Origin: Bigelowiella natans CCMP2755
Taxonomy: Eukaryota; Protista; Cercozoa
DNA: 64,000 bases
NCBI GenBank assembly: GCA_000320545.1
Contig: ADNK01002058.1
Span: 62,001-126,000 of the forward strand
Reading direction: 5' to 3'
The notes under the pieces were generated by a model. It did not search any database, was not told the DNA's origin, and saw nothing but the letters and a program-made list of their open reading frames with translations. Both the position numbers and the translations under genes were made by a program. This document shows positions 1,512 through 64,000 of the stretch, piece after piece. The first letter of the stretch is position 1; each line of letters starts with the position of its first letter.

Positions 1512-4500
1512 CTATGCATCTTCTTCGAACTTTTTTGTACGCATGGCATCCATCGCATCCTTTGCCCGTACTATTAAGTCGTCTAGCTCGTCTTCTTTGC
1601 AGTGCAAAGTTCGCTTCAATGTTTCACGCATATCAAGGGAATTTCTCAAGATATCTTCTTTGAGATCCTTTGCAGCCTTTCGCTGTTTGACTGACGCCGG
1701 CCGGGCCGCCTTTTCCTCAGAGATAGCCTTGCCTTTTTCCACTATCTTCATCTTGACACTTCCGACGAACTCATCGAGCAAGTTCGTCTGAATTTTCAGC
1801 TCAGCAGCGTCGTCGTCGAAAGAGAATGACTTGAGCTTAATAACGAGATCTTCGTAGCCATCGAGTTGCGATGATATCCATTTCAAATCCGACTCCAAGG
1901 GCTTGAGCCCCTCCTCCCTCAACTCAGCTTCGATCTCGCCGCGCATCTGCCCCCATTGGAGTCCCTGAATTAGCTTGTTGTAGTTCATTATGATATTTAA
2001 GTGGCTTTTCTGGTCTTTATTGAGCGACTTGTGGGTATTTCCCACCAAACTTATCACGCAGTGAATCATATACCGTACAGATTCGTCGAAAATACAGTTT
2101 GGAGCTTCCAGAACGAGCTCACGATATTCAGGCTCTGTAGCGGTGGTACTGGGTCTGCTATTGCTTATAGAGAGTTGTTCTTCATCAGTCTTTCTCTTCT
2201 TCTCTTCCTCTGTAGGCGTCGGTTCATCTTGTCTTTTCACCTTGGACTCCTCCTGGACAAGTAGGAATGCTAACATCTCCATGAAGTCAATTTGTCCGTT
2301 ACCGTCAATATCTATCTTCTCCACGAGTTCAGAGAGCAGCGATGGGTCTAGATCTTGATTCAAGCTTCGCATAATAGGGACGAGTTCTTCCATATCCAGT
2401 TCGCCGCTTCCGTCCGTATCCATCCTGTCGAATATTGCCTTGAACTCGATCGCACGCTCCCTGGGGAGCACTCTGGCCTGGCCATTTTCGTGAGTATGGT
2501 ATGTGTAGTTTCCTGTCTCCGTATCATACCTCAACGAGTTAAACACAGTATCTGCCATGGCTTCGTCGAAGTTGACTGCCTTCTCCTTAGTGACTTTTAT
2601 GATTTCCTCAAGAACTTCACTCACCTGGATTTCCGGCCTGTGTAGATTCCATGTGCGCACGAGGAGCTGAGCGGCGGGAGAGCCCTCTTCATCTATCTTG
2701 CGATCCTCCTTGTCATTCCTCGGCCTCTTTTTCTTAAGGACGTTGGTTTCCTGCCATGACCGCACATTTGAGGGAATATGTGCTGCAAGAGAGAGATAGT
2801 TGTCCTCTATAGCAGTGCCAGGCTGCCCTTTCCACTCCCAGAAATAAGGTATTGCCTTTGGGTTGAGAAGCAGATCCGACAGGCAGCCAAGGACCATCGA
2901 ACGCATCTCTGGAGCGCACACGCACAAGGTGTCCAGGAGGAGATCCAAGCCGTTAAGCCGCAACCAATGTGCCTCGTTTCTAGGGTTTCCGATGATCGCG
3001 TATGACACGCACTGGAGGACGGAGAGGAGCATCTCAACCTCTGCCCCCCCCTCAGATGTCAGGGCCTGCAAGGCGGATCCAATAGCTTTGATACCGCCCT
3101 CCTTCCTAAAGATGCGCTGGTTGTATGGATGATGATCGCACAGCAGTCCTAACACTAACACCGCGTTGGCTCTATCCGCTGGAGAGTTCTCAGAATCGTT
3201 GAACAGCGTGAACATGAGACGGAAATCGTTGCGATGAATGTGCACGTTAGTGGTGTCTGCGTGGTAAATAACTTTAACTAGGGTCTGAAGCACAAGGTTG
3301 GTGAGCCGCTGCGTCACCTCTAGGTGCTGTAACCCATCCACAGCGCGCTCGATCTGGACCAGGATGAACGCCATAAACTTTTGGTGTATTTGAAGGGCGA
3401 TGAAAAGTCGCGGCGCTCGTGGCAGCAGTTTCATGAAGAGGTGGAGCGCTCTCCTCTTGAGTTCAATTTTCTGCTGGCTATTCAGTAGTTGCAGCGACGG
3501 ATGCTCTTCCATTTCGGGGTCAAGATGGACTAAGAGAGCATGAGCTATTTTGTTTTCGATAATGATTGAGAGGCCGAGATCGCAATACACCATCTCCTGT
3601 ATAAAGGCCCAGAGAGTATTTTTATACTCGAAGTCGGACTCCGAGAGCGACATGCTGGCGAGCTCCTCTTGCCCGAGCTCAAGCTTCGTTGACTGGTGTA
3701 TTGCAATGGCTAGGCATTGGTTCAATACGAGCATCATGTGGTTCCCTCTCTCTCGAGCCAGAAGGCAGAGGACGACTGCGAGCTCATTTCGAAGCTCCTT
3801 ATCCTTGAGCCTGTAGCAGTCCTCAAGTCGGATGAGCAGGTCACTCAGCGCCTCAAAGTTCGCGTCTTTACTTCCAAACATCAATGCGGAAGGAGGGTGG
3901 ATGTCCAAGATGTTCCAGATAATCTCCACGGCGAGCTTAACGAGTTGTGTGCGATGGTCATGTCGCAGCACCACACCAAGAACAGAGAACGCCCCCGACT
4001 TCACAATCAGCTGTGCACATCCCTGATGAAAGCTGAGCTCGCGAAGAGCTTCCAGGATTGAAAGCGTTACAGGCAGATAGCCCTTCGACCAAGCGAGCGC
4101 CCGCTCATTGTAGCCGGCCTGCAGATTCAGGGCCTGTTTTTCCTCAGCATCCCCCAAATGCTGCGAAAGATGATTCTGATCTCTAGTTTCGTTTCCTGAG
4201 AAAGCTGCGTCGCTATAACTTCTTCTGCTCAGAGTACTATCGGTGTCACTTGGCTTCCGCACATTCTCTACGATTTGTGTGTTGACAGCGTGTTGTAATT
4301 GCGTCGTTAGCCGTTCGATTATGCCCCCCTCAGCTATTATCTGATGTATGATGACGCACCACAGGAGCACGGCAGACAATGAAAGAAAAGAATTTTGGGA
4401 GAGGGAAAGAATGGGCTTAGAAGGTCATTATTATAATCATCTCCTTGCTTTTATGTAGATTTTGGAAGCTGTTCTCAAATTCATTACTATATTTTATTTA

Positions 4501-5570
4501 ATTTTTTTAAAGTCACAATCATATATGCGTACATACGGAGTGTAGTGCCCTACCCCCCCCCCCCCCCATCTTTCCTCTCTTTCAGTTGGAATACTAACCG
4601 AGAAGGGCAGATGCTTCTCTTGTGCGTTAGTGGAATATCCCTTGGTTGCCTGTATGGCAAAACGAGAGATGGCTATTGCTATCTCTCTCTGGATCTTCAC
4701 ATTTTCGATACACATAGCTCGCCTGCAGAGTTATGGAATGTAAGAACAAGATAGGACAGGAGATGAATAAGGGATTACCCTATTGTGGAAATTGCCGCAA
4801 GTTGCGCCTTCGTATACTCAAGCGCTTCGAAGCTCTTGTACCGCACAAATGGGTATCCGTGTATCTCAATCAGTTCGCGTAGAGGCTCGAGGAACAAATC
4901 CACCCCTGAAAATCAGCATTACTTTAATGCAAAGAAGACCCTTATGGGGACCCATTCCCGTTATTTGTATTCGTCTCGAATATGGAGAATTTTCACATTT
5001 TGTTTTTTCCCTTCGCTCAATCCGGATAAGGAGAGCGTGAGAGGAATTGTATGGTAGAGAAGAGGTGGAGGGGTGGAGCGACAATAGTCACCTTGTAATA
5101 TGCCTTCTATGAGCAAATTGGTGAGCTCTGCAACTTTATGAAGGTGCCATACAGGAAGCCCTTGATCCCTGCAGAAATGAAAAATGGGGGAAAGGAAATA
5201 GTATACCAGATATAATTTGTTGATCTCCCTGTCAGTCGTAATGTTAATTTAATTGACTGTCTCCGAAAATTCACTTCATCCTCATAACATTTCTATATAT
5301 TTTCATACGAATCTCTGCTAAACAATGTCGAACAGGAGAACATCGAGTACTGACCTGCATTCTCGGCATAGCTTCTTCACTGCCCCTGCCTATTCATCAG
5401 ACGGAAGAATTAAGCTTTTATCATGCCGCTTTGTCTTAGTCACATATAATTTTTGAACGTATTCGATCAAGGTAAAACCTGGCGAGTGTGCAGCTCCCTG
5501 GTGGTAGGATCTTTAAACAGCTTGATCCCATCTTCCAAGATGCGAGCCACTCTTTTCGAGTACCCAAGCT
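1512..5570 (-). CDS. CFAP69: Cilia- and flagella-associated protein 69 (ARM-repeat) with an inserted EF-hand pair; start codon not located
   Basis: Large exon 1512-4340 plus upstream exons: GIKLFKDPTTRELHTRQ (~5478-5570), AVKKLCREC, DQGLPVWHLHKVAEL, LFLEPLRELIEIHGYPFVRYKS and ENVKIQREIAIAISRF. Motifs YRLKDKELRNEL, DFEYK and VLGCLSDLLLNPKAIPYFWEW resemble CFAP69. Confidence 0.8.
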
Positions 5571-6641
5571 GAGCAAGGATATAATCTTAATATACTTCTA
5601 CACCGCTAATAGTATGACGCTTCGTAGCATTTCATGATAGGTAGTTAAAACGTTTCTCTCTCCTAATCCTTTCGAAGAGAGTTTGAACACATGCTCATTT
5701 TTGTTTTTTCGATCGGCGCTGTTCACTATTCATTGGTTTGTGATGTTTCGTGTAGATGTTTATTGTTTTTTGCCTCCCAGTCATTTATACAACACAACTA
5801 CAAGATGAAAATCCATTTTTATGTTTTCCAGTGTTCCCGTGCAGAGGCATGGGGTGGGTGGAGACCTCCATATCGCCGTTACTCGTGGGCGTTTTTGGTC
5901 GAAGGGGTTGGCAGCGTAGTGTCGTTCGATATCTGTTCAGATGTAAAATATGTTGTCGTAGGATAAAATCCACTGGTTATTTAATTGGAGAATCTGGATG
6001 AGTTACAGTTTCTACGACATCCACTTTCCGAGATTTTAGGACGGATGTACCGGTAGATCTAGATCCAGCGGTCCAGCCAGCTGTCTGCGTTTTGCAACAC
6101 ATTGCACCATGCGATTACTCCTCGATAAACCCAAAATGATGTTGTCGTATTTTGAAAACTCCTTGTTTTTTGGTCGTCGAGCTGGCAGTTACAGTGGGAC
6201 TTGGACGTTGTGACAAGCAGAATGCGTTGTGTTTTCTCCTTGCGACAACAGTAAATGAAGGCGCACAGAAATAAAGTACCACGATTCCTCTGATCGTCCA
6301 ACTCTACGAATCAAACAGATCTGAATCGAGTTGTCGCTCCCCCCCTTCCGGAAACTGCTACGTTCGCCCACGTTTAGCAGAACGTACAGAGAAGTTTCAA
6401 AGATTTAACGTTTAAGAGATAACTTCGAATCTGGGCAGTCGTCAACGAATAACAGTTCTGAAGTCGAACACCGGAACCCTGACCATTCCTTCATCGACTG
6501 AGGTCTGCACGAGAACATTCATGCTGACAGCTGCGATTCGGTTTCATCAGCATTTATCATTCACATTTATCATTTTGGTGACCTATTCTTAGCACTTTAT
6601 TTGAGCTGAGGAAAAGAAGCAAAAGGTATAGTGGAGGGACA

Positions 6642-8053
6642 ATGCCAACGTTACAGCAGCAGCAACAACCAACATCGCCTGCTTCGAGTAATGGGCATCG
6701 TCATGCAGAGGGACGTCGTCTCGTAGGTATGAGTGTGAATACTTTGTGGATTCACCCTGATTTTCTTGTAAAATGGAATGAAATAGTATGCCATCTGTTC
6801 GCTCTCCCGTCCAATCTTACTCAGGTCGCGTTAGTCGCAATCACGCAGGGCCTTCGTCAATTCCATCAAAGTTTGAAACCATACTCTTCCATGGTCAGAA
6901 GGAGGTACGTTAAAATGGTAAAGTTAGTATTTAGGGAAATCCTCTGCCGTGTGATAGTATGACCATTACCGTTTTGATGTAGGCTAAGGGTTTCATCTCC
7001 GGTAGCCTGCGATTCAAGCACGACAAAGCATACGAAGGGCCCGGCCCTGGGGCTTATTCGGTTGGAGGCCTTTCTAGCAAATCCACAGAATCCTTTTCAA
7101 AAAAGGGATATGGAAACTTAGCAAGTAGTTCGAATAGATTCCACGGGCCGCGCCCTAGCTACTATCCCGGTCCCGGTGAAAACAACTGGCTCTCCTCAGT
7201 AAAAGGAAGTCGTGTCCAAAACCACCGCCATGTCTTCGCCTCGAAGTCCCTGAGAATACCCCAAGCACGACGTGATAATACAGTTGGGCCGGGACAATAC
7301 TACACCCGCCATTCTCCAACAAAGGTTTATGTTTATCGAAGCCCAAGCGGTGGGAACCCGAGAAATAACCCGAAGGCTGCTGAATTGTTAAACCATGAGC
7401 AGCTGAACAGCGGCGAGGCGCTTCGAGAAAGAGAGATGCCTATGATGCAGACTGGATTTAACATGTGTGATTCCAGATTCCCAAAGCGGAAAATCGTCAA
7501 ATCACCCGAACCAGGAACATATGATCCCATTCCTGTGTCCTCTAGCGTCAACCCTGCGCATAGCTCGTTCAAATCTACAAAGCAAAGAAATTTCGAGCTT
7601 ACACGCACGCCGAAAGACATGATGCTTCACATGAGGCCCTACTCTAATCCTGGACCAGGGAGATATGATGACGGGCAGTACTGGCGTCTAGTTCGGGACA
7701 AGAAACCCCAGAAGAACTTTATCAAGAATCACAGCGATCGTTTCGGACGGCCGTTGCAGCGTAAATCGACTTCAATGCCGCCAACGAAGTATCCTGGCCC
7801 TGGACATTACAACCCAGCGGTGTCAGTGAGCAACAGTGGGAACTCGAAGATGGCGAAGTCATGGATAAATAGGGTTCGGATGAAGTCTCGACAAGAAGTA
7901 CGAAGGAACGATTCCGTCTTTGCATCGAAAGCCATAAGGGCGACTTCCTCTCCTATCGTCAACGCCCCTGGACCAGCCTATTATAAGCTAGGTTCGAACA
8001 AGAAAAAATCACACAATGCGCATGCAAACGCCTCTAGGGTGTGGGTTAGTTGA
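6642..8053 (+). CDS. STPG1: Sperm-tail PG-rich (SHIPPO) repeat protein, STPG1-like
   Basis: Spliced exons give SSIPSKFETI / KGFISGSLRF..GPGPGAY..SFSKKGYG..SNRF..YPGP and further PGPGxY repeats (PEPGTY, PGPGRY, PGPGHY, PGPAYY) in ORF 7385-8053. Confidence 0.75.
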
Positions 8054-42407: not shown

Positions 42408-44168
42408 ATGGCGTACCACGCCGACCATGACAGCGATACAGAGGCATTGCAGATTGGTGAAGAGGACGGAGAGTCGCGTCTCGATCTTCAAGCCGGGGAC
42501 TCTTCAATAAATGACTTTGCACACAACGCCTCTTCCCCAAAGCACATTGCAGGACAGCGCAGCCATCACAAGCCATTGGCGGAGGAGGAGGATGAGGAGA
42601 TGGACGTCAAAGAGGGGAGGAGGAGGAGGAGTGTCAGTGAACACTTTCCCAGAGCAAAGCCTATAGGATCATTTGAAGCGTATATGCATCTAGTAAGGGG
42701 GAATCTAGGACCCGGAGCGCTGAATCTACCTTATGCGTTTGCAAGGGTAGGGTGGCTACGGGGCTTGCTGATGCTACTTGTTGTCTCTGCGCAAGGTAAT
42801 TTCAACCGATTTTGAAAGTATTTGGTATTCGTGGAAGCCTTTCTAACTTCAATATACTTTCACTCATGTTCGATGGAAGGCCTCGCTCGCTAATTGTTGA
42901 TTTTTCACCCAGGAATATATAGCATGAATACTTTGTTGCGGTGCAAGCGAGCGCTGAAGAACAATCACCGTAGCCCTGAAACGTACATGGACGTAGGATA
43001 TATGGCACTTGGAAAACCAGGAAGAGCAGCCATTCAGACATTAGTGGCAGTTTTGCAATTTGGAGTCTGCTGCGTGTTCTTACAACTAGTATCTACAAAC
43101 CTGGAAGCAGGGTTGCAGGCCATCGATCATCCTATTGCTGGTCCTGTGTGCACGCTTATCGTCACAGGAGTCATGATAGCTCTCTCGATGTTGCGAAGGA
43201 TTCAAAATATGAAATGGTTGACGATAGCGGCGAACGCTATGATGCTCATTGCATTGTTTTCAGGAACAATCGAGGCATTTGTTGTGCTTCATGACACGAA
43301 GTCCAGGGGGACTGGCTCTGGCTCTGCAACTGACGTGTTTTTTTTCCTTAGCAGCTTGTTTTATGCATATGAGGGAATAGCAATTATCATGCCAGTAGAA
43401 AATAGTTTCTGCAGGACTCTCGAGAACTCGCTGGAGCGCAGTCACAGCTTTCAGAATATTCTCGTTGCCGCCATGGCCACGGTGGCATTCTTGATGCTCA
43501 TCGTCGGGGCCTCTTGCGGTGCAGCATTCCCTGGCATTGAGAGCGGATCAATCACAGCTTATTTGTCGTCTGAGAGGAATAATCCTTGGTTTAAAGTCGT
43601 CAACATTTTGACACTAATTGCGGTGTTGATGACATTTCCTCTACAGCTCTACCCTGCTGTCGAAGTCATCAACGAGTGGTTCGGCCCAAGATGCAAGCCT
43701 ACATGCTGCCAAGACAGAGAGAGAAAAGCTCCTGGCGGTGGTGGCGGCGCAAACAGTCTGAATGATCATAGACGAATCCCTGAGTCGGAGGTTGAGCAGC
43801 AGGACACCACGAACGCTAGTATGAGCTCCTCCTCTGCCTCGTCTGCTTCTGGCGTGTCAAGGAGCAGTGCCAATGCAGAGTGGATCATCCGGCGGATAAT
43901 CATAGTAATGCTGAGCGCTGCCGTGTCGTTGGGAACAAATAACCTGGGTTTGCTTGTCGCTCTTGTTGGTTCTGTTGGATCCCCAGGCCTAGTCATGATG
44001 CCGAATATCATCCATTTGCGTCTTCAGTTTTCCGGACAGATAGCAATGTCTTATCTGGCCGTGATTGGTGACATCCTCGTCATTACATTCGCGTTGATTG
44101 TTGGCGTAGCTGGAACGTATTTCGCGATCACTCAACTAGTAAATGCCCATAATTCCCCGGATATATGA
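42408..44168 (+). CDS. Amino acid/auxin permease family transporter (SLC36/PAT-like), one intron at about 42796-42912
   Basis: HLVRGNLGPGALNLPYAFARVGW, FYAYEGIAIIMPVEN, TFPLQLYPAVEVI and LVGSVG, with about 11 hydrophobic segments. Confidence 0.9.
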
Positions 44169-52245: not shown

Positions 52246-53513
52246 ATGCTCCTCGCCCCCCAAACTGTATTTCAGTCCTTACGTCCCTCCTCACGGGACG
52301 AATGGTTGCCAGAGGATGATGGTTGCCACGGACTTTTCCAGTTTGACCAGACGGAAAAAGAGGAGGGTTGCGGAAACGACGACGATCATTGGTGCAGCTG
52401 CCAAGATGACAGAGGATTTGACGACATGCTGGACATGCAAATGTTAGGAAAGAAGAAGATAGACACTAAGGAGAGCAAGTACCGAGTAGGCTCTGTTCTC
52501 GGAATCGGTTCCTATGGAGAGGTGAAATCATTTTACTTCATTGGCCAAACCATTCATAACGACGTTCTTTAAAACAATAGGTCCGCTATGCGACGAGAAA
52601 GAAGGATGGGCTACCTGTAGCGATGAAGATTGTCGATGTCAAATGCCAAGGGTCTTTGGTCAATGCAATGATGAAGCGAGAGATTGAACATCTTCAAGAA
52701 TTGGACCACCCAAACGTGGTCAGACTGGTAGAAATCCTCACAAATGAGCCTACCAATGGCACCTGGTGCTCCCTTTGCGCATGTTCGGAGTGCAGATGGG
52801 ATGACAAAGGACAGTGTGTCCACTGTAGTCACGAAAGCTACTATCACGAGGATCAGGTTCAATCCCGTGAAGTGCTTATAGTTGTCCAGGAGCTTGGGAT
52901 AAATGGAGATTTATTCTCATTTCTCACAACACTGGGATTCTTCCCGGAGACACTAGCCCGAAAATTCTTCAAAGATCTTATTTCTGGTTTGGAGCATTGC
53001 CATTCCAAGGGCATCGTTCATAGAGATATAAAGCCAGAGAACATGGTTCTCGACGAGAACTACAACCTGAAGCTGATAGATTTTGGTCTGGCTGCAAAAA
53101 GCTCTAAAGCTGGAGCTACCTACCACAGCGGTGTTGGCTCACAGCCTTATACTCCACCGGAAGTTCTCTATAATATCGAGGAGGGAAAGAAGAAAAGAGC
53201 TTATCGAGGTGAACCAGCAGACCTATGGAGCTGTGCTGTCAGCTTATACGTCTTTCTCACAGGCTACCATCCTTATCGCCGCCCTCTCCTAAAGAGTTTT
53301 GGTGATAAGCCAGAACAGCAGGCTTGTCCTCATTTTGCTGCACTATTGAGAGGCGAATCGTACGAAGGAATCTCGAAAGAAGCAAAAGATCTTCTAATGG
53401 CGATCTTTCGGCTAGACCCGGAGAAGCGACTCAATATCAGTCAAATAAAATCTCACCCATGGATGAAGGGGCCAGTGAAAAGCTACCGTCAGATCCTAAT
53501 GTCAATTAGTTAG
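52246..53513 (+). CDS. CAMK-group Ser/Thr protein kinase (possible extra 3' exon to 53638)
   Basis: LGIGSYGE|V, VAMK, HPNVVRL, HRDIKPEN, DFG, GSQPYTPPE, DLWS and HPWM. Intron at about 52522-52580. Confidence 0.92.
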
Positions 53514-55127: not shown

Positions 55128-58100
55128 CTACACATGCATAATTTTGCTGTTCTCCTTATTGTCTTTCAGATCTTTAATTCCCCCTTTCTGCTGTTTCTTT
55201 TTCCCATTCCTTCCTTTCTCCTGGGAATCCTCCTGCTTTTTTCTTTCTTGTTGGCCAGCCGTATTGTCGCAATCGTCACTAACCCCCTTCTCCTTCTCCT
55301 CCAAGTTCTTTTCTACCATCAGGCGCTTCCTCTTCCTCCTCCTCCTCCTCCGACATTGCCTCCACCAGCGAAGTATGATCATAGCAGCCATCCATTTGAA
55401 AACATCCCATGCTATTATCTCATTAGAGGAGCAGGAAGAAGAGGAGGGGGACTCCTCCTCCTCCATGGAACAAAATCCAGTAGCTGATACTGCAGCGCGG
55501 GGTGGGGGTTGGGTCGGTGGATGAACGTTCTCCGCACAACATAGAACTAGCTTGGTAATAGAATTGATCATATCTGTGTAGTGTACGTACCAAGGTCCCC
55601 CCTTCTTCCCTATTATCCTCGTTCGGAGCATCTCACAGCGCTTGAGGAAGAGGATAAGGCGGCGTCTGGCAAAGAGATCAAATGCATCTACATCGCGCTT
55701 TACGTCCTCAGTGCTACGGATCGGTCGGCGACTGCTCTTAAAGATATCAGTGCAGCACTCGCCACTGAGAAGTGTCTCTCCAAATCCAAAGCGCTGCGGG
55801 GCCGTGAGGATGACGGCGAGGAAGTAGCGGACAGGGAGCTTTCCAGAATGGGTGCGGTCAAAGTAACTCCAGGCACTGCGCCACATATCCACCGTTCTGA
55901 TCTTTTGACTCGTTTCGTCAAGATGACTTTCTGCAAATTTCTCCAGCACAATTGCTACAAAGAGATTGATGAGCAGTAATCCCCCCACCAGCACAAAAAT
56001 GATGAAGTAGAAGGCAGCCCACGGGGTACCACAATCGCCTCGTTCCATGCTGCAATCGCTGTTGCCTTCGTGGATCATCGTTCCATACATAACCAGCTCC
56101 CACATATCCCCAGTCGAGACTCGAAATAGCGTCAACATGGCGTTTGGGAAATCGGAGAAATTGGCGTGGTCTTCGAGACCACGCTCCATTAGCATTATCT
56201 TCCCAAAAAATTGCATTCCAAAGATAGCGAATATGAAAAAAACCACGAACATCACCGTAGCAACGTTGAAGGAGGCGAGCGCGGAGATGCTGAGCGTCTC
56301 AAACATTGCTTGGAGTTTCTTAAACTTCTTAATGAATCGAAACATTCGGAGCAAACGGAAAAGCCGCAGGATGTTGAAGACGACTGTCGGGCCGGAGCTC
56401 ACGAAGACAGATACAGAGGAAGCTAGGGCTAGGATGAAATCAAACACGTTCCACCAAGATCGAAAATACCAGATATCCCACGCAATGATCTTCACAACCG
56501 TTTCGAATGCAAACACACCCGTAGCGATCAATCCCACGTAGAACTCCGCATCGACGAACTCAGAGGGCTGCCCGTGGTGTTGCATGCACACCGTGAGCAT
56601 GTTGATGAGAAGGATGATGGTGATACACATTTCAAATGGATGTGTCATGTCCAAACCGTCACCACAGAGCTTGAAGAAAAATCGTCTTATCCGATGAGAT
56701 GGAGCTGGCGCTCGGAATGGCAGCAGCTTCTTATGTCTGATGACGTGCAGGGCCTGCATTAAAATGGCTTGATATTCGGTCATCAAGAACTTTCCTTTGT
56801 CCTCCAGTACTTTCTTATGCTTATTGAAGGCTCCTATAAGCGCTCCAACCAGCAGATTGATCATGAAGAAACCGAGGACGAAAACCGCAAGGATGAAGAA
56901 CAACCCTGCCCATTCATTGAAGTTTTTCTGTGCATTGCGATCCACACCTACAGCGTCAATAGCGCGGTACATGATCTCGTTCCAGTCTGAAAGCGTTGCA
57001 AGCTGGAAGAGAGAAAGCATTGCACGACCCACATTGTCAAAGTTGGTGTCATGCACACGCCAAAAACCGTCTGGGCATTCTGAGCGGGGAGCTCCTTGCG
57101 GAACACTGCTGTCCAGACAGAACCCAAACTTACCCATGAATAGACTTACTCCAAACACCGACATGATGAAGAGGAGCACGGTACCAAAGACCAAGACGGG
57201 GGCGATCGCTGGAATAGCATACTTGAAGCTATATATTACCACACGCATCTCTTCCACCTTTCCTACAATGCGAAGAGGGCGCACTGCACGCAGCGACCGC
57301 ACGGAATTGAACCCCACCCAGCTACAAATAACGACGACAAAATCGATGACGTTCCAGCCATTTCTCAAATACGCCTGATCGGATTCCCAATACACCCCGA
57401 AAGCGATGAATTTAAAAATCAATTCTGCTGTGAAAAGCACCTCGGTGACAAGGTCAATATAGGCATAAATACCGTCGTTCACCGCGGAATGTGGGTTGTT
57501 AAGTGCCAACACGGCACAGTTAAGTACCACAAGAATTGTCATTGCCATCTCAAACGCAACATTCTTCCTCACCATTGTAAACACAAAGAGCCTCACCCAG
57601 TTTGTTGGTGAGAGAAATCCAATAGCGTGGCCTTGAGGATCTTCCCTATCTCTCGTCTCTTGATGTCCTTTATCGTCCTCTTGCTTCTTTCGTTGACGCT
57701 CCTCCACGCATGTTTTCTCCTCGTTCATCTTCTCAGCCTTATATCGCTCAAGGAGATACCCAATCATTAATTCGTATACTGCTACTACTTGAATATTGCT
57801 CTCTTCCACTTCCACCTCGGGTTTCTCATTTTTATCATTATCATTGCTTCTGTCATCATTGTCATCATCATTATCCTTGAATATCATCATCTGCCTTAGA
57901 TCATCATCTTGTCGTTGGCTCTTGTTCATTTTCACGCTCGCCTTTGCCGTGTTTTGCTTTATGGTGTTTGATGGTGTTGGCTGCTGCTCAATAGCATCCA
58001 AAACGGCCTTTCGATCACTGTTATCATCACCACCACCATCTTTGTCCTCCTCGTTCGCATAACCACCCTCTTGAAACTGCTGTTTTTTCTTCTTAATCTT

Positions 58101-59565
58101 CTTCATCCTAATCATATTCTCACCACCACCACCACCATTGTGGCGACTATCACTACTGCTGCTACTACTTCTATCTCTTCTTCTTCTCCTTCCCTGCCTG
58201 TTCTTCTCTTGCTGCTGTTTCCCCCATCCCTTACTCTCCCTCTTTCCTCCTCCTCCTGAGGCAGCATCATCGTGGTATATGAATAGTACCTCTCCTTTGT
58301 GACCTTCCAGCGGAAAGGACGTTTTTCCATCAAGCACATTGACATGAGCCACTTCTTCCATCTGCGACAGCCAATTCTTAATCTTGCGGAGCACCACCAC
58401 CTCAACGTCCTCCTGCCCTAGCTGCTCCAAGAGCGCAACGACGAAGATGTTCATTATCATGAACGTGCCGATTAAGTAGAGGAATACACTGTAGAATATA
58501 GCTTGCCGGATGGTAGCTCCAACCATGACCCACGTAACATCTGGCCAAGAATCGCCTGAGAGCATTTGATACACAACAAGAAGACTTCGATAAAAGGTGT
58601 CAAAGCTTTGCCGTGGCTGTTGGTCCCCGAGATCATCAAACTTGCCGGCGAAGAATTGCACTCCAAGCACAGTGAAGATGAAGATAAAAAGAACCATTAA
58701 CACTCCTATGAATAGCACCTGCTTCAAGGAGTCGTTGAGGGTAATCAGCAGCTCACGAAATCTCTCCCAGCGACTAGACAGGAGAAATAACCGTAGAATA
58801 CGAATCGATCGCACTTGAGCGACAAGGTTCAAATCCCCCAGCGATAGCTCCACAATGGATATTACGAGTAGAATTACTTCTCCACAGCGATACCAAGCGA
58901 CGAGGTGGTAATGCACCCCGGTGGCAAGAACCCTGATTATCACCTCCAGCGTGAAGAACACGGTGTTAGCAATGGCAATTTGGTGCAGGACCAACGTCAA
59001 GGAATCCGACATCCCTGCGTGATAAGCGCTGCTGATGGCGGTGTCAAGTAGAATTGCTATCGAAACAATCCAAGAAAATGCATGAGATTGTATCACATTG
59101 AAGAGAAATCTCCGCATACGGTTGAGCTGTGGGCTGCTGTTATCCGGTGATAAGTGGAGAAGCAATGGGCGTTGTCTCGATTTCCACTTGAGAGTCGCGG
59201 CTTGGATTAACGTGACAACCTTGGTTCTTTCCCAAATTAAGTCAACCCATTCCTTCTGGAGCTCTCGGCGAAGTTGCTTTAGTTTCACCAGATCTCTCCG
59301 CGTCTGCTTGAGCCTAAACAACTGCAGCCTGGTCTTCATACGCACCATCTTACTTTCTAATTCAGCGCTCGAGCTTGATGTGTTGTGACGTTCTACAAAG
59401 TCACTGAATGGTGCCTTATCGTTGTTGTTGTCGTTGCGAGCTTTGTGTGTATTCCCGCCCTTATATTCCTTGCCTTCATGTATCTCACTTCTGGTACTTA
59501 GCTCTCGCAACGTTGCAATATCAACCATGAGTCCTTAAGGTAAGAAGGGGAGGGGAAGAGAGAGA

Positions 59566-59609
<44 letters not shown>

Positions 59610-60357
59610 GGAGGATGGATTCAAAACTTCCTTTTTATATATGTATTGTTGGGGTGATGATTGTTTTGTCTTAGGACAAGCACTGTTGTTACTACTCTGC
59701 ACCTCCTTCGTATGAATGATCATTAACAAATCTATCATCCACAAGTTATACAGATATGTATATAATAATATGTTATATATATTATAGCGTGTGTGTTACT
59801 ACCTAGGCTTGGGAGGGATTCTCTACGGCCGTTTCCTCCCCCTCCTCCTTCTCTTTCTCCTTCGGGCATTACATCGAGGAACTTTCGTAATTTTTTATGC
59901 TTATAGTCGAGACAGGGATCCTGCAACCTCCCTCCTCCCCCTTTCTCCTCCTCCTTGTGCTTTTCTTCTTTGCTCTGGTTCTCCTTGCTCTGTGGGGCGA
60001 GCAAAATAGTTGGTGATAGCGATAAGGGAGGCTGGTGCTGTAAGCGGCTGTTCGGGGACGAAGTAGTGTTTGGGGGGGGGCTACGAGAATTACGATGAGC
60101 AGATAGAAAGTGATCCTGCTGGTTATAGCTGCTACTTGTGCTTTGAGTGCGGTATGATGTGGGAGAGCACCAGGCTGTACTTTTGTTATCATCTGGGGGA
60201 TGAAGAGGATTCTTGTAACTGCCTCCTCCTTTCCCCCCTCCTTCCTTTCCATCATCGTCATCACCATCTCCGCTGCTGCTGCTACGGATGAGAGCATTGG
60301 TGTTGTCATCTTGGAGGGGTAACTTTTGGGTATCATTCATGGTGCCTTGTAAAGAAC

Positions 60358-60394
<37 letters not shown>

Positions 60395-62087
60395 TGAGAA
60401 GAATGAAGTTACTCCTACATTGACTACTACTAGCACCGACACAACACCACCACCAACAACAACAACTACTACTACTACTACGTATTACCCGAACTACGTA
60501 AACTACGTAGTTGTTTGCCGCTATTGTAATCTTCCTCTAGGATGCTGAGAGCACCACTGTTGCGATTATTGGCAAAGAGGGTAACGCTACTATCTCCACG
60601 TCCTCCTATAGACGAACTTGCAGGCCGCGTAAGTTGGGAGGGGGGGCGACTGTAACGTAGTAGCAAAGAGAGGAATGATGAGCATGATGTTTCTATAGAA
60701 GATGATGATAACAATGATGATGATGATGAGAATACCTTATTTCGGCGGTAGAGGTTGTGTTTGAGGCGTTAAGATTGGTTAAGGAAGAGGATTGTAGAAT
60801 CAATGTAGGTGGGGGGCGACGATGAAGTTGCTGCTGCTGAGTGCTGGTGGTGGTGCTGCTGCTGATAGTGGTGGTCTTTGTTATCTTCTTCTTCTCCAAG
60901 CTCTCATCATAAATGGAGGAGCTTCTTATCACCTGTATATTTTGAAGAGAAATGTAATTATGACATCATGATGATACATATACACGTAACACCACAGGTT
61001 GCGCCATGTTACTGTTACTACTACTACTACTACTACTTCTACTACTACTACGACTAGCAGTACCTCGTTGACTAATGGCTTGACTCCTGCAGGAAGGTGG
61101 CGAATTGAAAGCAATCCGTCATCATCATCGTCATCATCGTCCTCGAGCATCACCCCCCCCCCCTTCCCGGCATCACTAACACCTTCTGCCATGGCTGTAT
61201 TTGATTTACACGCACTGAGGTAAGGGCTACCTTCTGCTCCTCCCCCTCCCCCCCCCCCCCTTTTTGATGAGGCTGCTGAGAATGCAAGAGTGGCACCACT
61301 ACCCGAAGCTCTTCTTATAAGATGCTTTTTCTCTTCAATAATAGCATGGCGTTTTTCCTCCTCCTCATGCTCGAGCTCTAGACGTAGGAACTGGGGGTTT
61401 ATTGGGGCTTCAAGCCGTCGAGCCTTGGTTGTATCATCCTTTCCGTCTCTCGTCAGCTGGTACTGGGGAAGAGGAGGAATATGAGTAAAATGAGGAGGAG
61501 GAGGAGGAGGAGGAGGATTTGATGCTCTTACCCATCCGTTGTTTATTTGCTCCATCGCTAGCTTGGCCTCTCTTTCTATGATACGGATGCCTGCTTTCTG
61601 GATTGCAATGGCTGTTCCATCGAGAATCCCAGCCTGATGATGAAGAAGTAGAAGAGGGGGGTGGGGGAATAGCAATCAGGTTTTATTAATCCCTCTTATT
61701 ATCATTATGCTCCTCCCTTTCTTTGTTGTGTTATTACTTCTTCTCCTTGAGAAAGCCATTTGTTAAAATCATCATCGTTGCCCCGTGTCTTCTCCTTATC
61801 TCGCTGCACGAGCGATGAGTATCTGTGTACGTATTGCTTTGTTTGTTTGAATGCAGATAGTTGCGGAAGGGGGGGGGGGGGGGGGGGGGGGGGAGGGGAG
61901 AATGCAACACAGCCTAACAATCTTCTATCTAATGATTACTCGTCAGCGACGACGGCAAGAACGAGATTGATGGCAGTAAAGCTGACGATGAAGATAAAGA
62001 AGATGAAGAAAAAAGCACTGAATGGCGAGATCGCGTCCATTGTAGCGTACATCACCTAATGAGCAAAATGAAGAACCAAAAACAATA

Positions 62088-62123
<36 letters not shown>

Positions 62124-63700
62124 AGATCTCCATCATTGGTACATCATCATCATCGTGATCATCATGACTACATCCTGTACTACTACTCTACTACTACTAC
62201 TACCATTATTACTAGTACTACCCTTACTATTACTAGTACCGGGTCCCACGTAGTGAGCGTCATCACCCAAAACAAGGAATACGAAGCATCGAAGAAATTA
62301 TCGAAGCTTATTGTGCCAAATCTGTGTGTTTATCATCAAGCGTGTTGCGCATATATCAGCATACCTCTCATTATCATTATCATCATCATCATTATCAACA
62401 CAACACGATATGGATGGAAGATAAGGCGGGGGGATGTGGGGTCACACCTTGGATTTCCAAAGTCCTCCTCGCAAGTCGAATTACTGGGACATTGGAAGAA
62501 ACCGAATCTAGTGAAATTAATGAGTGGATAAAGGAACCAATGACGAGAATCAATTAGCTTATACTCAATTCGTAGAAGAGTAATCAAAGAAACTAAAGTC
62601 GGTCGATGACGCAATATTATATCAGTACAACTAACAGCACCCAGTCGAGTCGCAGGGACGGTCCTCCAAGCCTTCCACAATATTGCCAGAGAGCTTATCA
62701 ACACATCTTCCATGCAAGCCGCCCATAAACAGCGACAAGGAGACGGATGTGGCGATCATGAAGAGGAATGCTAGGACTAAAAACACTTCCAAAGACTTTG
62801 GTATGCTCATCAACAGCGTCTCTGTAAGTCGTCGCAGCTCTGGAAATCGCTGTAGTAAAGTACGTGTGTGTGTTGATTGGTTGGCTGTTGGCTGGATGAT
62901 AAGTCGTCTATTTGTTCATCAATTCATCCATCATGTGCCATATGAAAGGAAAGTCTTCAAACGGTCTGCCATCATTATCATTATCATCATCATCATCATC
63001 AATCATTCCTATACACATACCCACACACCACCTGTATTGTTCTTAGCGGTCGTAACAGACGAAATGCCCTTAAGACAGAGAGGATTCGCGAACCTCCAGA
63101 AGCAAGTGAAATAAATCCATTAACCACGATTATAAAGTCCAGGATGTTCCAATAGCTGTAAAAGTAGCCAGCCTCCATGTAAGACTCCTTCTTGGAGGTC
63201 ACCAGCACGTCATCAGTGAACGTAATGCTGCTTCGAGGAGGATGATTGGAAGGTGAGGCGCCATCTTCATTGCCTTTCTCTTCATCTACAGTACTTTCTG
63301 CTGCTGCTACTCCTCCTCCTCCTTTCTTGTTCTTCGATAACTCGCTGCTAACATAGAGAAACACCAAGCAACGTAAATGACTGATGGAAAGTCAAAGAAA
63401 AAGTTGGGGGGGGGATGGTAGGATCTAACTACGAATCATACAGAGGACTGATTGATGCTTCATTTTGTATATTTGTATAATACTTAGTGTGTGTGTGTGT
63501 GTGTGTATCTTCAATTGACCGATGGCTAGGAGCAGCTGGAGCAGCATCATCTCCACCTTCCGACTGCAAGAGACATGGGGGGGGCATACCGCATCCCAGG
63601 CCAAATGCTATCATCTTCAATGCAGCCTGAAAAACGCATTAATGATGACAACGATATACATAATAATCACGATCGTTTTGACAATGAATATTTGTTTATA

Positions 63701-63750
<50 letters not shown>

Positions 63751-64000
63751 TTCTTATGAGAATGATGCGTATGACAACATTCGTGTATGGGGGGAGGGGG
63801 TGGCATGTATGCGTTGGTAAAATGATGATAGTATAGACAGCACCTCTAACCCAAAAAGGATGACGAAGAGGAGATCCAGTGTCACAATGGCTCTCTGAAT
63901 TAATAAAGTCAAGGAGTGAGTACAATTAAGAGCTCATCTTTCGAAGCATTATTGCCACAAAGAGTTGTAGGTAGTAGTTGTTGTTATTGTTGTTGTATTA
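55128..64000 (-). CDS. Four-domain voltage-gated Na+/Ca2+-family channel alpha subunit; the 5' end lies beyond the window
   Basis: ORF 55128-59528 encodes domains II-IV with S4 RxxRxxR helices and P-loops. Domain I S2-S6 lies in exons at about 61940-63890 (LRAFRLLRPLRTI; FDNFFDASYSLFWVMTLTTWD; INLVLAVVAD). Confidence 0.92.

Follow-up and report, generated by a model that had tools for sequence, protein, structure and literature searches.

A four-domain channel gene with a T/D/S/D selectivity ring

The window analyzed here is a stretch of 64,000 nucleotides from the genome of Bigelowiella natans CCMP2755 (contig ADNK01002058.1, called C1679 below, positions 62,001 to 126,000). Its minus strand carries an intron-containing gene for a four-domain voltage-gated cation channel of the calcium/sodium-channel superfamily, i.e., a protein with four repeats (DI to DIV) of six transmembrane segments (6TM; S1 to S6). 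The selectivity ring of this channel, to which the pore loop (P-loop) of each repeat contributes one residue, reads Thr/Asp/Ser/Asp (T/D/S/D). Explanations of ion choice in such channels commonly rest on a few animal rings, namely EEEE, EEDD, DEKA, DEEA and EEKE, and the ring found here does not match any animal class.

A first-pass annotation, made by a model from the sequence alone, had placed the channel at 56097-62263. A channel is indeed encoded there, but the gene is wider and spans from 55128 to past the end of the window. DII to DIV lie in one 4.4-kb exon with an open reading frame of 1466 aa and three Ion_trans stretches (Pfam Ion_trans 1.2e-136), while DI is divided among about eight exons that continue past the window end (Table 1). 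The DI S3-S4 exon also scores against Ion_trans (1.5e-10), and the four-domain character is further borne out by a match to the Cav1.3 structure (E 2.6e-119). The upstream DI exons share the orientation of the DII-DIV exon, to which they are presumably joined to give four tandem 6TM repeats; the full-length orthologs described below have four Ion_trans stretches each. The DI exons placed so far have AG/GT boundaries throughout and keep the reading frame, and there are no Ns in the locus (window GC about 45%).

The four filter codons lie exactly where the first-pass annotation had put them. A P-loop with a pore helix and the signature T/S-x-X-x-W, in which X is the ring position n, is present in all four repeats. 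Ungapped alignment to EEEE channels, anchored on the F-D-N start of the pore helix, the T at n-2 and the W at n+2, holds the ring as T/D/S/D, and the shift of register to a canonical ring that the annotation had considered is not seen. In the HMMER alignment to Cav1.3 (PDB 7uhf), the DII Asp and the DIII Ser fall on filter Glu, and BLAST mapping from EEEE references places all four ring residues on Glu.

The annotation had also allowed for a different DI P-loop exon with Glu or Asp, and a loose P-loop scan detected no such alternative in the locus. The DI P-loop exon itself was confirmed exon by exon against full-length ortholog transcripts, with its end at 62321 and not at 62311 as first proposed. 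Its junction with the S6 exon (W-D-P|V-M-Y-A-T-M-D) is identical in three orthologs, two of them transcript-derived, which all use TLTTW and read TLTTW-D-P-V-M-Y-A-T-M-D without a break where B. natans has its intron. The T/D/S/D ring is real and not due to chance, because the four pentamers are identical in all four T/D/S/D orthologs at 45-49% identity over DIII-DIV.

Compared with the animal classes, the ring lacks the E/E/E/E composition of the high-voltage-activated (HVA) calcium channels Cav1 and Cav2, and it has neither the E/E/D/D ring nor the clade placement of the low-voltage-activated Cav3 channels. It is likewise neither the D/E/K/A nor the D/E/E/A ring of Nav1 and Nav2, and the channel falls outside the Nav clade and is like Nav only in its inactivation motif. 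Channels of the NALCN and fungal Cch1 type combine an E/E/K/E-type ring with a charge-poor S4, whereas S4 is fully charged here.

Orthologs and public annotation

Similarity searches used single exons or database orthologs as queries. A word-index protein search returned only EEEE relatives at ≤31% identity, and the orthologs were found only by a full HMMER protein search with a profile built from DIII-DIV of this gene and two paralogs. Rings were extracted from the best 150 matches. Among these matches, three orthologs have the identical pentamers TLTTW/SGDSW/TLSDW/TGDMW, at the identity given above: P0124, an MMETSP protein of 2132 aa from Amorphochlora amoebiformis (UniRef A0A7S0DM40); P0275, a complete transcript open reading frame of 2108 aa from Gymnochlora sp. 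CCMP2014; and P0123, an intronless gene encoding 1989 aa on a marine metagenome scaffold. The search for the ring in protist proteins, suggested in the first-pass annotation, thus returned it in other organisms. The gene for P0123 occupies 1719-7688 of its 12-kb scaffold (L027; ENA ERZ23491473 scaffold_5762) and adjoins a DOMON/cytochrome b561-like gene.

The public entry P0125 (EukProt, MetaClust; 448 aa) matches residues 663-1110 of the large exon (window 56199-57542), which cover DIII S1 to DIV S5, at 100% identity. In the NCBI annotation of Amorphochlora, the ortholog is divided between two proteins, GAB5357680.1 (967 aa) and GAB5357681.1 (453 aa). Both the P0125 fragment and the split Amorphochlora annotation look wrong, and the annotations of the B. 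natans gene and its Amorphochlora ortholog need correcting.

Paralogs in the B. natans genome

The B. natans genome has at least seven four-domain channel loci, comprising this gene and six more (Table 1), of which four carry an x-D-S/T-D ring, i.e., Asp at DII, Ser or Thr at DIII and Asp at DIV, and two carry E/E/E/E. This count is a lower bound because rings were scored for 32 of the 46 candidates. DI is missing from the locus on C1167 as that contig starts inside the gene. The paralog on C3151 has an intron that separates ...CVT from GDSW inside the DII filter motif (C3151:19460-19653, L016), and its filter pentamer is therefore assembled by splicing.

The x-D-S/T-D clade

Carriers of the ring form their own clade in trees with other eukaryotic channels, an analysis that the first-pass annotation had proposed. 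In a FastTree tree of 154 DIII-DIV segments, all channels with Asp at DII, Ser or Thr at DIII and Asp at DIV but one come together in one 20-row group with a support of 97, and the B. natans gene is among them. The group was recovered with 18 rows and an SH-aLRT of 97 in an IQ-TREE quick search of 60 DIII-DIV rows in which both filter pentamers had been masked (model LG+C20 PMSF; a tree built without NALCN sequences), and here the T/D/S/D ortholog group had a support of 100. As these channels form one clade even with the filter masked, the ring is a conserved trait of a subfamily and not a one-off. Judged from sequence, the x-D-S/T-D channels are a conserved channel subfamily, which is separate from the Cav1.3/Cav1.2 and Nav clades in the trees.

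The named members of the clade are chlorarachniophytes, Paulinella micropora (E/D/S/D and V/D/S/D) and a Symbiodinium cluster (S/D/S/D). Members of the clade differ in their DI residue, which may be T, A, S, D, E or V. The residues at DII, DIII and DIV are constant in type, and the one at DIII is always Ser or Thr and never acidic. The number of carboxylates at n and n+1 ranges from 2 to 5, and no clear rule across the clade links the loss of a DI acid to compensating gains of n+1 acids. The single carrier outside the clade is P0005 (EukProt, 2190 aa), a ciliate-type channel with D/D/S/D that lies inside an EEEE ciliate group. Its D-S-D pattern may be convergent and have arisen twice; however, its placement is uncertain because its amino-acid composition is unusual.

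The first-pass annotation had proposed a distinct selectivity class for this one channel. A distinct class of rings is indeed real, and a distinct functional class is plausible, as the ring is kept in orthologs, paralogs and the whole clade; the class thus extends well past the B. natans gene. For the same reason, the underlying observation is stronger than first stated.

Varied odd rings are already established in protist four-domain channels (PMC5824947; PMC6259924), and the algal rings SESE, TEND, TDEE, RSDD and RADD from Verret et al. 2010 are among those listed in PMC6259924. At the level of the ring letters, hydroxyl and acidic residues alternate in SESE as they do in T/D/S/D, but with Glu in place of Asp. 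Among the channels surveyed by Pozdnyakov et al. 2018 (PMC5824947) is a chlorarachniophyte four-domain channel, 'Lothag1' of Lotharella globosa, whose published DIII and DIV S4 strings match the A/D/S/D paralog type of the B. natans genome. One member of the x-D-S/T-D clade has therefore been catalogued before; it differs from the present gene in belonging to the A/D/S/D-type ortholog group, and the text of PMC5824947 is silent on its ring. The S4 strings of the B. natans T/D/S/D gene are absent from the supplement of PMC5824947, and the T/D/S/D ortholog group thus lies outside that survey. Our literature search found no work naming or testing a T/D/S/D or x/D/S/D ring, and a search aimed at chlorarachniophyte four-domain channels found none devoted to them.

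Gating determinants and relation to known channels

The ladder of Arg/Lys at every third position of S4 is kept in all repeats, with five charges in DI, three to four in DII, five in DIII and six in DIV. The linker between DIII and DIV contains the motif G-K-F-L-M-T in the B. natans gene and G-A-F-L-M-T in the orthologs, compared with D-I-F-M-T in Nav1.7, and such a hydrophobic triplet followed by Thr in the III-IV linker is seen as ancestral (PMC5824947). Acidic residues follow the filter Trp in every repeat (D, PD, NE and E). The additional Asp at DIII n+1, which the first-pass annotation had pointed out, is present and conserved in 4/4 T/D/S/D orthologs. Neither the large exon nor the full-length orthologs gave a match to the GPHH or IQ domains (PF16905, PF08763) that mark a Cav tail; the AID motif itself was not searched for.

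The best-scoring solved relatives are Cav1.3 and Cav1.2 (PDB 7uhf, 8we6), at E about 1e-119, along with Nav1.7. The two Cav channels share with the B. natans channel the 4 x 6TM layout, the charged S4, the pore helix and the T-x-x-x-W frame of the filter, but have an EEEE ring instead of T/D/S/D, and HVA Cav channels lack its FLMT motif in the III-IV linker. Structure matches to Cav and Nav, including Nav1.7, reach about 400 bits, compared with about 125 bits for NALCN. The likeness to Nav1 (DEKA) and Nav2 (DEEA) lies in the hydrophobic-triplet-plus-Thr motif of a short III-IV linker and, for Nav1, in a DIII residue that is also non-acidic. In contrast to these channels, the B. natans ring has no Lys, and its DIV residue is Asp and not Ala.

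As DI resembles DIII (TLxxW) and DII resembles DIV (xGDxW), the B. natans filter is two-fold rather than four-fold in character. This recalls the two-fold filters of TPC channels, in which domain 1 is akin to DI/DIII and domain 2 to DII/DIV (PMC6259924). However, TPC channels are dimers of two-repeat subunits with Asn-rich filters, and TPC2 is a distant sequence match (E 3e-12).

Ion selectivity and function

Mutagenesis has shown that loss of filter Glu turns Cav channels into weakly selective cation pores, and DEAA-type Nav mutants, or loss of the DEKA Lys, likewise give non-selective or weakly selective cation pores. DIII is the ring position that weighs most in the choice between Ca2+ and Na+ in animal channels. 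Animal rings that are Ca-selective or non-selective have an acidic residue at both DII and DIII, while Na-selective rings have a Lys at DII or DIII (PMC6259924). The x-D-S/T-D clade fits neither group since its DIII residue is always Ser or Thr. The conserved DII-DIV ring, with a DIII residue that is neither acidic nor Lys, therefore suggests selection for a pore chemistry outside the published rules.

For the T/D/S/D channel we lean towards weak Ca2+ binding with mixed Na+/Ca2+ permeation, which is what the analogy with classical Cav and Nav filter mutagenesis would lead one to expect. Depolarization would open the channel, and the F-L-M-T motif of the III-IV linker would inactivate it as in Nav. 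The filter would present carboxylates at just two ring positions, which face each other diagonally in DII and DIV, neutral hydroxyls at DI and DIII, and the extra Asp at DIII n+1. The affinity of such a filter for Ca2+ would be expected to lie far below that of an EEEE ring, allowing both Na+ and Ca2+ to pass, and in sea water the channel might act mainly as a fast depolarizing Na+/Ca2+ conductance and not as a Ca2+-selective channel.

Several points weigh against this account of the gene and its pore. Tight Ca2+ binding could be regained through the DIII n+1 Asp and the outer acids that directly follow the Trp (D/D/E/E). Nor is selectivity set by the ring residues on their own, as bacterial EEEE-type pores are Na-selective and the selectivity of snail Cav3 depends on its turrets (PMC5824947). 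Furthermore, the public protein sets hold only the 448-aa fragment of this gene, and the continuity from DI to DII, the N-terminus, one splice acceptor and the exons of the I-II linker are inferred in B. natans.

The outer acids are also the basis for a different reading of limited probability, namely that the channel has remained Ca2+-selective and that the Asp residues at DII, DIV and DIII n+1, with the acids after the Trp, form a sufficient Ca2+ site like that of engineered bacterial TLDDW-type pores. The conservation of the DIII n+1 Asp in all four orthologs, the acids after the Trp in all four repeats and the position of Cav channels as the nearest solved structures in sequence agree with this, and n+1 acidic residues are known to matter for Ca selectivity (PMC5824947). 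However, D/S/D is also kept in C3642, C3151, P0122 and others whose n and n+1 positions supply no more than two carboxylates. In addition, no clade member has an acid at the key DIII position, and no Cav-tail IQ or GPHH domain was found. A further reading, that the channel is Na+-selective without a filter Lys and hence an algal functional analog of Nav1, is unlikely. It would suit the Nav-like FLMT motif, the four charged S4 segments, the neutral DIII and the marine, high-Na+ habitat, and the TLxxW motifs of DI and DIII resemble TLESW, the filter of bacterial Nav channels. The non-selective behavior of DEAA-type Nav mutants argues against it, as does the lack of any known four-domain channel that selects for Na+ in the absence of a Lys (PMC6259924; PMC5824947).

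A role specific to the flagellum, as suggested in the first-pass annotation and as for Chlamydomonas CAV2, is quite improbable. B. natans is a swimming uniflagellate (PMC12730881), and in other protists, channels with four domains function in cilia and flagella (PMC5824947). However, complete ortholog transcripts come from Amorphochlora and Gymnochlora; A. amoebiformis is amoeboid in culture, with flagellate cells unseen for two decades, and Gymnochlora stellata is a benthic amoeboid species (PMC12730881). Because the orthologs are expressed in amoeboid species, the flagellar idea is unsupported, and nothing in the sequence or in the neighboring genes indicates flagella. It is very improbable that the gene is a decaying or mis-assembled copy whose odd ring reflects relaxed constraint. 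The fragmentary public annotation, the many microsatellite-rich introns and low-complexity linkers, and the one acceptor that could not be placed might be read in that way, but the 4.4-kb exon is open and free of Ns, the DI exons placed so far are in frame and bounded by AG/GT, the pentamers are identical in three orthologs at <50% identity, two of them expressed, and the ring is conserved clade-wide.

Beyond the mixed permeation favored for this channel, the x-D-S/T-D channels of chlorarachniophytes, Paulinella, dinoflagellates and uncultured marine protists might be a selectivity class of their own, and an ancient one. With Asp at two diagonal positions and small or hydroxyl residues at the other two, their filter of two-fold symmetry would then give fast, inactivating, largely Na+-carried depolarizations without a filter Lys. 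We regard this proposal as speculative and rather doubtful. If true, marine protists would have solved the Nav problem independently, without the Lys of the animal filter. The interest would be high if the clade turned out to carry Na+ without a lysine or to have some other new kind of selectivity. Asp, Ser or Thr, and Asp at DII to DIV are kept across lineages with <40% identity while DI is free to vary, and the clade is a compact natural sequence set on which the number of carboxylates needed for Ca2+ selectivity, and the repeats that must supply them, can be tested. The clade may also explain Na+/Ca2+ excitability in marine protists.

Exon map and neighboring genes

The exons, filter codons and paralogous loci are collected in Table 1. 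The acceptor of the DI S3-S4 exon lies somewhere within 63200-63347. The obvious acceptor, an AG at about 63347, leads to a frame with a stop, whereas several AGs in a polypurine run (GGAGGAGGAG, GCAGCAGCAG) lead to an open frame. The I-II linker region has no similarity to the linkers of the orthologs. An intron-less kinetoplastid gene with a broken DI was considered as an alternative gene model and rejected, given the regular GT-AG introns and in-frame exons.

Table 1. Features of the B. natans channel gene (window coordinates unless stated) and four-domain channel loci of the genome (contig coordinates)
Feature	Position	Strand	Evidence
Large 3' exon: end of I-II linker, DII, DIII, DIV, C-terminal tail to stop codon	55128..59533	-	Open reading frame and Ion_trans; polypyrimidine tract and AG acceptor just upstream of 59533
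DIV filter codon GAT (Asp) in TGDMW	56106..56108	-	Codon read; BLAST mapping
III-IV linker with Nav-like hydrophobic motif G-K-F-L-M-T	56700..56790 (approximate)	-	Motif comparison with orthologs and Nav1.7
DIII filter codon TCA (Ser) in TLSDW, Asp at n+1	56988..56990	-	Codon read; HMMER against Cav1.3
DII filter codon GAT (Asp) in SGDSW	58551..58553	-	Codon read; HMMER against Cav1.3
I-II linker region: low-complexity coding exons and introns, open frames 59735-60442 and 60929-61675	59534..61939	-	Open frames
DI S6 exon (VMYATMDA...LAVVAD)	61940..62055	-	AG/GT; contiguous with P-loop exon in ortholog proteins
DI P-loop exon (FGTISFDN...TLTTWDP), 82 nt	62240..62321	-	AG/GT; ortholog matches
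DI filter codon ACT (Thr) in TLTTW	62252-62254	-	Codon read
DI turret exon (FGFFQCPSNSTCEEDFGNP)	62448..62507	-	tblastn of P0124, P0275, P0123; AG/GT
DI S4-S5 linker and S5 exon	62641..62849	-	Ortholog matches, splice boundaries
DI S3-S4 exon, 3' part; S4 = R-x5-R-x2-R-x2-R-x2-R	63032..63196	-	Ion_trans; 55-65% identity to orthologs
DI S2 exon b (AALKMIAFGLGC)	63590..63626	-	AG/GT
DI S2 exon a (RAIVTLDLLFVILFGLE)	63844..63894	-	Splice boundaries
DI S1 exon, outside the window	64002-64061 in extended coordinates = L015:5002-5061 (L015 = contig C1679:121001-131000)	-	Splice boundaries
C1679 (this gene), ring T/D/S/D
C3151, ring A/D/S/D	~14.5-23.1 kb
C3642, ring A/D/S/D	~60.6-66.9 kb
C3204, ring S/D/S/D	~36.6-47.2 kb
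C1167, ring ?/D/T/D	0.2-4.2 kb
C3708, ring E/E/E/E	~156.5-162.1 kb
C3424, ring E/E/E/E	~138.9-145.1 kb

An Rfam scan of 50-64 kb returned no RNA gene. The neighboring open frames encode a protein kinase domain (52623-53513, plus strand, Pkinase 7e-50) and an amino-acid transporter (42894-44168, plus strand, Aa_trans 2e-46), and neither gives a functional hint for the channel. The introns of the channel gene are rich in CT, AT, CA and GA microsatellites (e.g., 59535-59600, 62090-62130, 63470-63510 and 63700-63760), and its coding linkers contain many runs of poly-Gly, Ser, Asp and Lys.

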